From NCBI GenBank assembly GCA_039096225.1, contig JBBPEB010000030.1, positions 620,001-684,000 on the forward strand: a DNA stretch of 64,000 nucleotides. The letters run 5' to 3'. The stretch is from Blastocystis sp. Blastoise (lineage: Eukaryota; Protista; Bigyra: Opalinata). The notes under the pieces are model-generated. The model was not told the DNA's origin, searched no databases, and saw only the letters and a program-made list of their open reading frames with translations. Position 1 is the stretch's first letter, and each line of letters begins with the position of its first letter. Below, piece after piece: positions 6,184-58,625 of this stretch. A program made the position numbers and the translations under genes.

Positions 6184-9100
6184 ATGAGTGTATCGTTTCA
6201 AAATATTCTCATTGCTGGTGTTAATGTTCAATTTCCAAAAGATAAAACTCCATTTGCATCTCAATATGCATTGATAGGAAAAGTAAATTTTCATAAAATA
6301 TATATTCGTATATAATATACAATAATTAGATTATCAATGCATATGAAAAAGGTCAGAATGCATTATTAGAATCTCCAACAGGTATATTCACCTATCTATA
6401 TGCTTAAGAATTATATAGGAACTGGTAAAACATTAGCAATCTTGACTTCTTCGTTAACATGGCTAAAAAAACGACTTGTTGATATCGAGAATGAGAAGGA
6501 TAAAGAGTTAAAAGATATAGACAATACTGAAAAGAGTGACGTTTCAGTCAGCTCAGATAGTGAAGAATCTGAGTCCGATACAGATGAGAAACCACCGTAT
6601 TTTTATTATTTTTTTTTATTTTTATTTTTATTAATAAATATAATTCATTTTAATCTTATTTGAATGATTTGTATAGTTCCCAAAACAAAGTAGAACCTCC
6701 AATAAAACGTCCTCGACCTCGAAATATCCCTCCAAAAATATCCTCCTCCTCTTCTTCTCGAGACAATATAATGATAGATCTCTCGTTTATTGAGAATACT
6801 CAAGAGGATATACATATTAATAAGAATCATGAATCCTCTACTAGTAGTATATCATAATTATTATATATAACTCAAATATAATGATTCTATTATTGCTATA
6901 TATACTCTTTATGTGTATTCTATTATTCATATATAGAGTATTTTCTATTATTATATAATTATTTTTATTCTATAGGCGATGAAGAAAGCAGTTATTCAGA
7001 AAGTAGTGCTGATTCTATGTATATTGTTTTATATATATATATTATTCATTTTTTTAATATTTATTTTTTTCTTTATATATATATTATTCTATTTTTTTTT
7101 TATTTACATTTATTTTCTTATATATATTTTCTCTCTATATATATATATAGTAATCATATTCATCAACAAAAAATAAAGGATGAAGGTATATATATATATT
7201 AATAGATATTCATGAATATATACATATATAATATACATATATAGATGTACCTATACGTAAGGAGAAGACGGAAATGATCCCGCGGTTATTTCTTACTTCA
7301 CGTACACATGCACAAATCAAGCAAATGATTGCAGAATTGAAACGAAATGATTATTTGATTCGAACAGATAACTATTGTCAACGTATATTATTATTATATA
7401 TTCTCATCATTTATTTCTGTTTTTTTTTTATTTATTATTGATATTAACTTTAAATTAATTTTGAATTTTGTATATATTATATATATATATATATTATTAT
7501 TCATTATATATATTTCATATATGTGTTTTATTTTATATAATTATGAAATTATATATATATAAATTTTCAGGAACTGTTATATCTCCACATAAACAGGAAT
7601 CTATTCTTTCTCCTCCTCTTCCTCTATCTCTTCATAATAAGAACAACTCTTTGTCTATCCCTCCTTCTCTCTCTTCTTTATATACACAATCGAATACTAG
7701 TATTACTGATAATAATATGAATAATAATATGAATAATAAAATGAATAATAATATGAATAATAATATGAATAATAATATGAATAATAATATGAATAATAAT
7801 ATGAATAATAATATGAATAATAATATGAATAATAATATGAATAATAATATGAATAATAATATGAATAATAATATGAATAATAATATGAATAATAATAATA
7901 ATATATCTCCATTACATACATCAATGCCTCCTTTACAGATACCAATATATAATGATGATACTAAAAGTAATAATAGTAAATCACATGCAATTGAGGATGA
8001 TTCAGACGATTTCGAAACACAATCTATTTCTAGATCTCTTCCAAAAACAAAAAGAAGTAAAATTAAACCAAATAAAACTTCAAGTATAAAATCTACTAAT
8101 TCTAATTCAAAAATATCCAAAGATAATTCAGTCAATTTAAAAGATAATTCAGTCAATTTAAAAGATACTTCAGTCGATACAGCAGATAATCGCGGGAATA
8201 CCTCTATTCCTGATATTGAAGATACTCCTGCATTTACTGTAAAGAATTCTTTTCGAATGACTGTATTAGCTAGTCGTGATAAGTATTGTATTAATACTAA
8301 TATGAGGAAAGAAGCGAAAGAGAATGGAATACCTATTGATATTCAATGTAAAAACTGCCTTGGAACAGGTATGAAGATGGATATATACTGTTTATTTTAT
8401 AATAGAATAATTGTTATTGTTATTATTATGTTTTATATAGTGTTTATGTAGATATATACATTTGTTATGATTCATGCATATTTATATATATATAGGTGAA
8501 TGTATATATTATAATAAGAGTAAGATAGACGATATAGCTATGCGAATTAAAGGTATTTGGAACATAGACGACCTCCGTGATGTTGGCCTTCAACAAACCG
8601 TCTGTCCTTATGTATATCAATCTATATATTATATTATATTATATTATATTATATTATATTATTTTTGTATATAATTGAATTTCTGTTACTGATTCTGTTT
8701 TTATTATTTATTAATATATATTTCTATATTAATAGAAATTATAATAATTATTATTAACCTATATATATATATATATATTTCCTTCTTCTTCAGTTTCTCA
8801 GTCAGACCCTCTTTGAGCAAGCCTATATAGTGTTCTGTCCCTATAATTATATACTAGACCCCATGATTCGAGAGAAAATGGCTATTGGAATTAAAGTATA
8901 TATATATATATATATATATATATATATATATATATATAATGATTTCTTTTATTATTATATATACATACATTTATTATATAAATATTCTTATATATACATT
9001 AAGCATAAACATTATATACATATATAGAATTCATTAATTGTTATTGATGAAGCACACAATACTCAGAGCACGTGCAGAGATAGTGCGTCATTTGAATTTG

Positions 9101-56294: not shown

Positions 56295-58625
56295 TTAATA
56301 GATATACATGGGGAAGAAGAAGAGAAGATAAATGAAAATAATTAATTGAATAGCAAGAAGAATAACAAAGGCGGCAACAGGTCCATAACGATCCAGAATA
56401 ATAGGGAAACAAAATGTTAATATAGCATTCATTATATATCGAATAATATTCGCAAAACTAATAGCACTTGCTAGATAGAAAATAAATTATATAATATTGA
56501 TTAATTTAATTGTTTATATATAATATATAAATTAATTTTTTATATATAATATATAAATCAATTTTTTATATATAAAATATAAATTTAATCATATATATAT
56601 ATAAATATAATTATATATAAAATATAAATTTAATCATATACATATATAAATATGATCATATATATATATATACTTTTAAGATATGGTGGGAAGTCTTGAA
56701 CGAGACATACATAATAGAGAGATGCAGGTCCGAGACCAAATCCTATTAAGAAGACTAATGTACCGATAACAGCTAAAGGAACAGTTAATGACTTATTATC
56801 TTGAATCGCAAAACTATGTATATATAAGATAGTAATAACAATACTAATATGTGTATGAATAACAATAATAATAATAGATGGAAAAAATAGATAAGATATT
56901 ATAATAGTGACAGATTCTACAAGAATTATAAATAATAATAAAAGAATATACCTTAAAATAACAATGATAGTACCTATGACCAGTGTTCCCGCGGTTATTC
57001 GAAGAAGAAGAAGACGAGAGACTTTAGAGACGACGAAAGATGAGATAATTGAACAGATCGTCATTGTACAGCCAACCAAACCAATTTGTATTACTAAAAC
57101 CTATATATATATATATAGTAAAGTGTTAAAAGAAGAATAAAAATTCTTTTTGCCATAAATATAGTTAAATAATATATATATATATATACATTATCGATAC
57201 CAGCAGCTTGGAAAATAATTGGAGCATAATAAATAAATATATAAACACCTGTAATATTTGAGAATGCAGGAAGAATAATAGCATATATAAGCCATTTAAA
57301 ATTCTATATATATATATAGATATTAATATATGCAATATATATACATATAAAAATATGACAACTTTGCATAATTAATTGTATAAATATAAATATACAGAGC
57401 AATGACAAATTGAAGAATGAACGATTTCTTCATCTTTTTTATCATGAATATCAATTTCTGATTTGATTTGTTCTTTTATTTCTTTATTATCATCAGTAAC
57501 CGATGGTGTTGTTGTAGAATTAGTTTCTATATTCTTCTCAGTACTATTATTATTATCAGGAACAGAAACAGGAGTAGTAGATGGAGTAGAAGAAGCATCT
57601 GTTTTCTTCTTCCTTTTCTCTATATCAACTATATATATAATAATAAAATATAGAGAATAAATATTATAAATAAATAAAATAAAATAAATAAAATAAATAA
57701 AAACAATTAAAATAAAATAAATAAAAATAATTCAAATAAAATAAATAAAAATAATTAAAATAAAATAAATAAAAATAATTAAAATAAAATAAAATAATAA
57801 AAACAATATTTTCTATAAATAATAACTATTATTACAAAGAAAAAATAAATAATCATATATATACTAGGAGATTCAGGAGAGAAGAATAATATAATTAAAG
57901 AGAGAACACCCCAAATGGCGGCAAAAGCTAGTTGAAGGCGCCAACTCCAGGAAGGGACAGGAACACATTCTTTATCAAATTTAGGAGTAAATAAATTCAT
58001 ACATTGCTATATATATATTATATTAGTTATATAAATAAAATGAATTTTCATTTAATATTTATAATATATTATTATGAATATATATCATATGTTTACAATA
58101 GTCATAATACTATATATATATATACAGCAACAATAACTCCTGCACCTACAGCTACGCCAAATAAAGTACCAACAGCACTTTTGTGTTTCATTTCTGTGAT
58201 TTCCACACAATATAAGGGGAAAACACTAGCACTCATACCCATAGCAATACCTACAAGAAGTCTCATGACAACTAAATACCAATAATTATCCCAAGCAATT
58301 GTTATCAATGGAATAATAATACCAATAATAGATACAATGATAGCTGCAAGTTTTCTAGAGAGAGAGCTGCATGCCCATGTTCCAAGTGGAGCACCTACAG
58401 TAGCACCAACAAGAATAGAAGCAGTTAAAATAGATTGAAATGTTGAAACATCGACTTCTCCAGGTTCATATAGAGTACATCCAACAAGAGATTTTGACAT
58501 ACCTCCTACGATAGAATTGTTGTAGGAGTAAATCATTCCTCCCAAAAAGTTGAGAAAGGCTATAAGTCTGTTAAAGATAATAGAGTTTAACTCATACCAA
58601 ATAATAAAACTCTTCCTAAGCCCAT
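56295..58625 (-). CDS. MFS sugar porter (hexose-transporter-like), paralog 1
   Basis: GGMIYSYNNSIVG, LSRK, RLLVGIAMG..PLYCVEI, WRLQLAF, FSPESP, SNITGVY..IYYAPIIF, FGLGP, QDFP. Confidence 0.88.

Follow-up and report, generated by a model that had tools for sequence, protein, structure and literature searches.

The window analyzed here, a stretch of 64,000 nucleotides (contig 20: 620001-684000), comes from Blastocystis sp. 'Blastoise', a tortoise isolate with a genome of 33.3 Mb in 34 contigs at ~23% GC. Its genes are crossed by a 14-bp dyad with the consensus A-T-(TC, CC or AA)-C-C-R/Y-G-G-(GA, GG or TT)-A-T (the slash marks the center), which exists in three half-site versions, TTCCCG, TCCCCG, and TAACCG. 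The motif-bearing genes are unrelated and include those of a DEAD_2 helicase, a BRCT protein, an Ig-like surface protein, a kinase (in an insert), and VPS13. Genomes of tortoise Blastocystis isolates measure 26 to 33.3 Mb at 21 to 23% GC, and the paper describing them mentions neither the palindrome nor methylation (Lind et al. 2025, PMC12129017).

Copies of the motif in the window and across the genome

All 22 sequences listed in the initial annotation are present where it had placed them. With mismatches scored against the half-site versions and the mirror images of each, 16 of them fall within two mismatches, compared with ~0.3 expected by chance, and five stand at three, while the one at 19170, with four, is probably a chance match and drops out. 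Copies were also said to occur in every codon phase, and phases 0, 1, and 2 are indeed all used. The listed sequences are the following.

7276-7289: mixed half-sites with an intact CCGCGG core; 2 mismatches; phase 2; in a 69-codon open frame 5' of the helicase exon
8186-8199: mixed half-sites; 1 mismatch; phase 1, encoding DNRGN; after the (NNNM)n repeat and just before the DEAD_2 domain match
10725-10738: TTC-type on both sides; 1 mismatch; in a 56-codon frame of low coding score, exon status uncertain
11012-11025: weak copy; 3 mismatches; either a decayed copy or chance
12073-12086: perfect palindromic copy; 0 mismatches; phase 2, encoding FPRE; in a 314-codon frame, outside a weak DUF2990 match
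16769-16782: weak copy with a perfect right half; 3 mismatches, in the left half only
19170-19183: probably not a copy; 4 mismatches, a class no more frequent than the Markov model predicts
25753-25766: weak copy; 3 mismatches
39047-39060: center CA/CG; 2 mismatches; close to the end of a 1599-codon frame without a Pfam domain
39725-39738: mixed half-sites, center CG/GG; 1 mismatch; phase 0, encoding IPGVI; directly after the BRCT domain match
39989-40002: TTT-type halves with an intact core; 2 mismatches; in a 69-codon frame, BRCT gene region shared with 39725
45635-45648: He_PIG gene; 1 mismatch (center A); phase 0, encoding IPTGI; in a 2281-codon frame
46265-46278: He_PIG gene; 1 mismatch; phase 0, encoding ITTGI
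46694-46707: He_PIG gene, repeated-domain boundary; 2 mismatches; encoding ITTII; domain position shared with 47120 and 47945
47120-47133: He_PIG gene, repeated-domain boundary; 2 mismatches; encoding ITTGI; paralogous position, repeat alignment without an indel
47945-47958: He_PIG gene, repeated-domain boundary; 2 mismatches; encoding IPTVT; half-site type unlike the paralogous positions
51601-51614: TCC-type half, center CG/TG; at most 2 mismatches; in a minus-strand gene
51639-51652: weak copy, 38 bp from the 51601 copy; 3 mismatches
52354-52367: minus strand; 2 mismatches; phase 1, encoding NNRGN; in an Asn-rich frame of low coding score
52760-52773: 1 mismatch (center); in a 48-codon exon-like frame of the same gene as 51601 and 52354
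53585-53598: weak copy; 3 mismatches; in a 277-codon frame beside a poly-Asn stretch, same gene as 51601 and 52354
56985-56998: minus strand; mixed half-sites with an intact core; 1 mismatch; phase 0, encoding ITAGT; in a 156-codon frame

Three further copies with three mismatches, at 23187, 39768, and 59814, had not been listed; about half of the copies in this class may be noise. Of the five He_PIG gene copies, three lie at one position of the repeated domains and are thus not independent. Most occurrences of CGGGAAT in the window are preceded by the mirrored half. Motif density here is ~5 times the genome average, and whole-window k-mer statistics are too weak to reveal the motif.

Genome-wide enrichment, which the initial annotation had proposed as a check, is borne out by all four motif patterns, each of which lies far above its control, the same pattern reversed but not complemented.

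Palindrome with at most 1 mismatch: 405 sites, control 0
CCGCGG with loose flanks: 1798 sites, control 106
TTCCCNNGGGAA (TTCCC-N2-GGGAA): 558 sites, control 1
ATHMCCRYGGKDAT: 1141 sites, control 5

Likewise, in a larger sample of 264 kb of the Blastoise genome, 26 copies with at most two mismatches were counted against ~1 expected from a third-order Markov model, and 27 with exactly three against ~14. Enrichment declines smoothly with mismatch number, from far above 100-fold at zero or one to 13-fold at two, 2-fold at three, and 0.8-fold at four, as expected of a force that scales with similarity to the consensus. Half-sites within two mismatches are paired in inverted orientation 26 times, everted twice, and never as direct or reversed pairs, and motif flanks surround every one of the nine CCGCGG hexamers in this sample. 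Self-comparison of the 264 kb gave no duplicated segment with a motif copy.

Neither selection on the proteins, as the initial annotation had already argued, nor general codon usage accounts for these copies. In the 42 longest open reading frames (ORFs; 70 kb), synonymous codons were shuffled inside each ORF in 300 shuffles. The excess over such codon-shuffled coding sequence, a check put forward in the initial annotation, is clear: five copies with at most one mismatch were observed, compared with 0.16 after synonymous shuffling and 0.00 after shuffling of codon order, and 11 with at most two mismatches, compared with 1.08 and 0.13, respectively. The observed count was reached by none of the 300 shuffles, and a looser copy set agrees. 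The reported use of scarce codons is equally evident, since motif codons make up 0.22% of all codons yet 7 to 14% of all CCC, GCG, CGC, CGG, and GGG. At the peptide level, a degenerate back-translation of I-P-A-G-I has 275 matches genome-wide (~140 sites), with the rare-codon form CCC-GCG-GGR in ~90% of those listed, whereas the permuted peptide I-A-P-G-I has three, in AT-ending codons, which makes I-P-A-G-I ~90-fold commoner. From the shuffles, the rare-codon share, and the I-P-A-G-I excess it follows that codon choice is skewed toward the DNA word and that the peptide repertoire is too, though less strongly.

The anatomy of the motif is that of a composite dyad. In a tally of loose-flank CCGCGG sites, the three bases beside CCG are TTC in 28%, TAA in 22%, and TCC in 16%, the rest being minor. 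Positions 3 and 4 covary within a half (TC 47, AA 32, CC 11, TA 7, AC 3, and CA 0), whereas the two halves pair independently: judged by position 4, there are 15 C/C, 7 A/A, 22 mixed, and 14 other copies, compared with 16.5, 6.9, 21.4, and 13.2 expected. The spacing is fixed, with N2 accounting for 558 of the 777 matches to TTCCC-N(0-8)-GGGAA, and nearly all of the other spacings listed are TCCCC-version copies in an unchanged register. The center is purine-pyrimidine in 82% of copies. A sample of 50 TTCCCNNGGGAA sites gave GC 8, AC/GT 26, AT 7, AA/TT 8, and other 1, and a sample of 50 ATHMCCRYGGKDAT sites gave GC 15, AC/GT 29, and AT 6, so that CCACGG/CCGTGG variants form the commonest center class in both (26 and 29 of 50); these frequencies fit each CpG being intact with a probability of 0.5 to 0.6. 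There is no coding-strand bias, mixed copies being divided 6 to 6 by orientation and center variants ~13 to 10 on the coding strand, or about equally without the He_PIG repeats. Around the copies, no sequence conservation was seen beyond the 14 bp.

The initial annotation had proposed a binding site for a dimeric protein. The dyad at one fixed spacing, the independent halves, and the lack of strand bias fit recognition of duplex DNA by a putative dimer, and to this extent the proposal stands. Hairpins, template switching, and transposon ends would give matched halves, and an RNA reader would show strand bias, so this anatomy speaks against all of them.

Origin of the copies and their restriction to exons

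The polarity of change can be read at one site, in P0355, a 1750-residue kinase-like protein with a WD40 end (contig 4: 150952-160900). In its WD40 exon, the peptide F-V-T-A-G-I is spelt ACC-GCG-GGA-ATC, which is the motif. In a relative of 43% GC, whose protein is 59% identical, the peptide is kept and spelt ACT-GCT-GGT-ATT; in a relative of 41% GC (34% identical) it is nearly kept and spelt ACT-GTG-GGT-GTG. Both relatives are richer in GC and lack the motif at this peptide, which argues that the Blastoise copy is derived, through synonymous changes mostly from AT to GC.

Elsewhere the copies lie where proteins appear to be little constrained. A further copy in P0355 sits in a linker too divergent to align with the relative, and another lies in a Greatwall/MAST-like kinase, within an insert of ~250 residues for which the orthologue has unrelated sequence. 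All five further cases examined lie outside Pfam domain cores. At the orthologous positions of P0355 there is no indel at the motif; nor is there one among the He_PIG repeats, where three copies occupy the same domain boundary and differ in half-site version. These comparisons show that copies are made by point substitution on existing coding sequence and not inserted, that the changes are synonymous where the peptide is conserved and compatible and amino acid altering in unconstrained linkers and inserts, and that copies arise against the AT-ward mutation pressure of the genome. The kinase in question (L005:8319-9998) carries its low-complexity insert between the DFG and APE motifs, and in a relative of 48% GC (L034) the insert is alike in length and unrelated in sequence.

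This history bears on the idea that the copies are relics, that is, survivors of an ancestral GC-rich sequence shielded by a bound protein from AT-biased mutation. Relatives do have 37 to 57% GC, and we estimate that in an ancestor richer in GC and almost entirely coding, CCGCGG would have occurred a few thousand times by chance, comparable in magnitude to the 1798 sites counted. However, the sole polarizable site lacks the motif in both relatives, which use AT-ending codons there, other copies lie in linkers that have diverged past alignment, paralogous domain positions differ in half-site version, and full 14-mers are far too numerous for chance ancestry. We therefore regard relics as quite unlikely. 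Shielding of G:C pairs as the sole cause, which the initial annotation had considered, is not supported either: the copy in the conserved peptide appears to be derived, mostly from AT to GC, and an ancestor would have had too few 14-mers by chance.

The relatives themselves offer little of the motif, although the sample is small: ~44 kb of GC-richer Blastocystis contigs hold one good copy, in the lineage of 37% GC, and none in lineages of 41 to 57% GC. The one copy (L026:11800-11813), from a relative found in gut metagenomes, has one mismatch and encodes ITADI in a poly(A) polymerase gene. It could mean that the motif is older than the tortoise lineage, or it could be chance; it could not be matched to the Blastoise poly(A) polymerase orthologue, which is 45% identical. 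In Blastoise, the sole genomic place able to encode D-I-T-A-D-I is contig 14: 713303-713320, where the peptide is spelt in the rare codons of the motif.

A mobile or templated origin would make the copies transposon excision footprints, palindromic insertions like the Rickettsia palindromic elements and the GC clusters of yeast mitochondria, or products of template switching at quasi-palindromes. The word is palindromic and DNA transposons abound in the genome, with 28 matches to Mutator-like element (MULE) transposases. Against this, there is no conserved sequence past the 14 bp, an insertion of this length, not being a multiple of three, would be out of frame, and neither paralogous nor orthologous positions show an indel. 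Moreover, mixed half-sites are as frequent as independent pairing predicts, whereas element ends or hairpin copying would match the halves. On these sequence comparisons such an origin already appears largely refuted, and we give it next to no credence. Several of the MULE matches (e.g., contigs 14:135472, 14:501176, 16:374926, and 18:363247) are equal scoring, with uninterrupted frames of 650 to 760 residues, which suggests that these elements may have been active recently.

The initial annotation had seen no copies in introns. In our sample, 24 of the 26 strong copies lie in frames of positive coding score and all five motif-like copies in P0355 are exonic, which agrees with that observation but, with introns at 13.5% GC, is weak evidence. 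Exons make up ~53 to 60% of the P0355 gene span and have 30.7% GC, compared with 13.5% for its introns, of which there are at least 25, measuring 32 to 648 bp; near-matches to the core, which has six to eight G/C, are at least 100 times rarer in introns. This contrast between exons and introns is unusually sharp in P0355. In 27 kb without open frames there are no copies at up to three mismatches, where the enrichment seen in coding sequence would predict ~2, again with introns at 13.5% GC. With near-matches this scarce, the restriction to exons is explicable by composition; it is real, yet it needs no exon-specific mechanism and may be purely compositional.

Such a mechanism might nevertheless be imagined at the level of RNA, the word serving as a structure or as the site of a protein in mature mRNA, or being written into genes via cDNA-mediated gene conversion. 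The exonic position of the copies is what one would then expect. In contrast, mixed half-sites are unable to form a hairpin, mixed sites divide 6 to 6 by orientation on the coding strand and center variants ~13 to 10, an RNA reader would meet four unrelated words, and composition alone predicts the restriction. This possibility is, in our judgment, highly improbable.

A putative dimeric binder and comparable systems

The reading toward which we lean, with moderate confidence, is that the motif is a DNA-level site of a putative dimeric binder and that weak selection, or a repair bias dependent on binding, has built up its copies through point substitutions wherever proteins tolerate it. A sequence-specific dimer would read the 14-bp composite dyad on double-stranded DNA, either as a homodimer accepting two or three half-sites or by free mixing of paralogous subunits. 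A weak directional force, growing with closeness to the consensus, would create the copies, and this force might be selection for binding sites or a bias that binding imposes on mismatch repair or gene conversion. Protein constraint would keep it in check, so that copies accumulate in genes that are long and little constrained. Transitions might later erode the two central CpGs; alternatively, the binder may tolerate any purine-pyrimidine center. Exons would be favored mainly as the sole source of near-matches (~31% GC compared with 13.5% for introns in the single gene mapped).

Selection would imply an abundant new DNA-binding protein that organizes some process along gene bodies, and biased repair would amount to a form of drive new to eukaryotes. 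In both cases the force would shape codon usage and peptide content, with dozens of extra I-P-A-G-I and S-R-G-N peptides. The AT-rich genome makes the signal clean, as more than 1000 GC-cored copies would each test a DNA-level force against protein constraint. A purely molecular drive, in which a dimer biases mismatch repair or gene conversion toward its own 14-bp site without any function at single copies, is a possibility that we take seriously but hold to be doubtful. If true, the site would spread through coding DNA against mutation pressure, rewriting codons and peptides, as a nuclear counterpart of the bacterial uptake sequences and of the cyanobacterial highly iterated palindrome HIP1.

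Several points weigh against a binder acting in this way. The polarity of change is based on one orthologous site, and a binder-free cause of the covarying half-sites is formally possible. Eukaryotes are not known to have a biased repair system that is sequence specific. Along contig 2, the CCGCGG-type copies occur in clusters (gap lengths have a coefficient of variation of 1.39; P = 0.007): ten gaps are shorter than 1.5 kb, compared with 4.5 expected, and others reach 60 to 90 kb; regular spacing, as of a structural lattice, was not seen among them, and this clustering argues against a role needing regular or even coverage. No binder was found: the COE domain (PF16422) and the Zn-cluster domain were both unmatched in the genome, although the searches were silent in every control genome too. 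E2F/DP genes are present, but the GGCGCC core of E2F sites is the poor control itself (106 compared with 1798), and the spacing differs.

The presence of E2F/DP genes does raise the question of whether the copies are ordinary transcription factor sites, for instance E2F-like ones, of a regulon that overlaps coding sequence in a compact genome. E2F sites have the consensus TTTSSCGC and a palindromic form centered on GCGC; the half TTCCCGC resembles this consensus, and the motif-rich genes of the window include those of the DEAD_2 helicase and the BRCT protein. However, more than 1000 copies lie along the bodies of unrelated genes and not at gene starts, the TAACCG half is unfit and the dyad is 2 bp wider than the palindromic E2F site, and GGCGCC with AT flanks, at the 106 sites mentioned, is not enriched. 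We consider such a regulon unlikely.

A methyltransferase could write the pattern instead, if it marked the CpG core and a partner mismatch endonuclease restored deaminated sites by very-short-patch repair, so that the frequency of the word climbs. An iterated palindrome in all reading frames has a precedent in cyanobacterial HIP1 (PMC4390886), and many variants at the central CpGs are of the C-to-T type. On the other hand, the sole match to PF00145, or to any C5-methylase-like gene, is an intron-split DNMT2/TRDMT1 homologue (contig 34: 406469-406912; L025:1501-1938), the best solved relatives of which are human and other tRNA-Asp methyltransferases. The genome has no match to the Vsr mismatch endonuclease or to N4/N6 methylases (PF01555), and none to MT-A70 (PF05063), a weak negative since the last search was silent in control genomes too. 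Furthermore, efficient repair would clear CCACGG/CCGTGG, yet these are the commonest class, and a 6-bp enzyme site leaves the 14 bp and the covarying flanks unexplained. Methylation with patch repair is thus very unlikely, and the methyltransferase targeting suggested by the initial annotation is not supported.

As a pattern, the motif nonetheless resembles HIP1 (GCGATCGC), a short GC-rich palindrome of cyanobacteria that is iterated thousands of times, in genes and in all frames, and whose function is debated (PMC4390886, PMC13756078). Like HIP1, the Blastoise motif is a palindrome far over-represented genome-wide, within genes, and in all frames. In contrast, HIP1 is bacterial, has 8 bp, occurs in coding and noncoding sequence, and is tied to two orphan methyltransferases, whereas the Blastoise motif resides in a eukaryotic nucleus, has 14 bp with alternative covarying half-sites, and is accompanied by no DNA methyltransferase found bar DNMT2. 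More generally, bacteria have genome-wide iterated words that override codon choice, such as HIP1, uptake sequences, and Chi; in the literature we found no comparable iterated word described for any eukaryotic nucleus.

The uptake signal sequences of Pasteurellaceae and the DNA uptake sequences of Neisseria, words of ~10 bp with more than 1000 copies, accumulate through molecular drive, occur in all frames, favor weakly constrained genes and protein segments, and alter peptides. Blastoise copies likewise concentrate in weakly constrained genes and segments and alter peptides, in a small sample. Unlike the Blastoise motif, however, uptake words are not dyad symmetric, and their drive consists of biased DNA uptake and recombination in competent bacteria; we know of no natural DNA uptake in Blastocystis, where a drive would need another basis.

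Dimer-bound palindromes of 12 to 16 bp that are scattered on the chromosome, often within genes, are known from the bacterial Noc-binding and SlmA-binding sites, MatP matS, and parS, and the 14-bp palindrome bound by Bacillus subtilis Noc looks very similar to the Blastoise motif. Those arrays comprise tens of regional sites bound by bacterial proteins, whereas the Blastoise copies number a thousand or more and are clustered by gene; no homology is implied. The metazoan EBF/COE site (ATTCCCNNGGGAAT) is fitted letter for letter by the TTC-type homotypic copy, including the 2-bp center. EBF ignores the center, though, whereas the Blastoise center is purine-pyrimidine in 82%, and the TAACCG and TCCCCG halves are not EBF-like. 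The initial annotation had noticed this likeness without implying homology, and kinship behind it finds no support, as no COE DNA-binding domain was detected in a search that was silent in control genomes. Finally, the yeast pleiotropic drug response element (PDRE; TCCGCGGA) and other everted CGG pairs of Zn2Cys6 factors have a CCG/CGG core at zero spacing; a dimer reads it, and the flanks determine specificity. The Blastoise motif shares the everted core at zero spacing and differs in that PDREs are promoter elements with tens of copies.

Other features of the window

The DEAD_2 helicase exon contains a 12-bp coding minisatellite (7709-7897; ~16 copies, 98% matches) that encodes (NNNM)n, and arrays like it have at least 245 matches across the genome. 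A paralogue search with window positions 6900-8700 matched only this minisatellite, and alignment of the helicase exon to solved structures gave low-complexity matches only.

The He_PIG gene (42224-48862) encodes a single-exon protein of 2212 residues in which He_PIG (putative Ig) domains recur. The best-matching outside proteins are those of Bacteroidota, at ~27% identity, with paralogues in the Blastoise genome and in subtype 4, and the gene may be of bacterial origin. An alpha-galactosidase gene lies at 17776-18978 and has three more paralogues in the genome, 75 to 88% identical.

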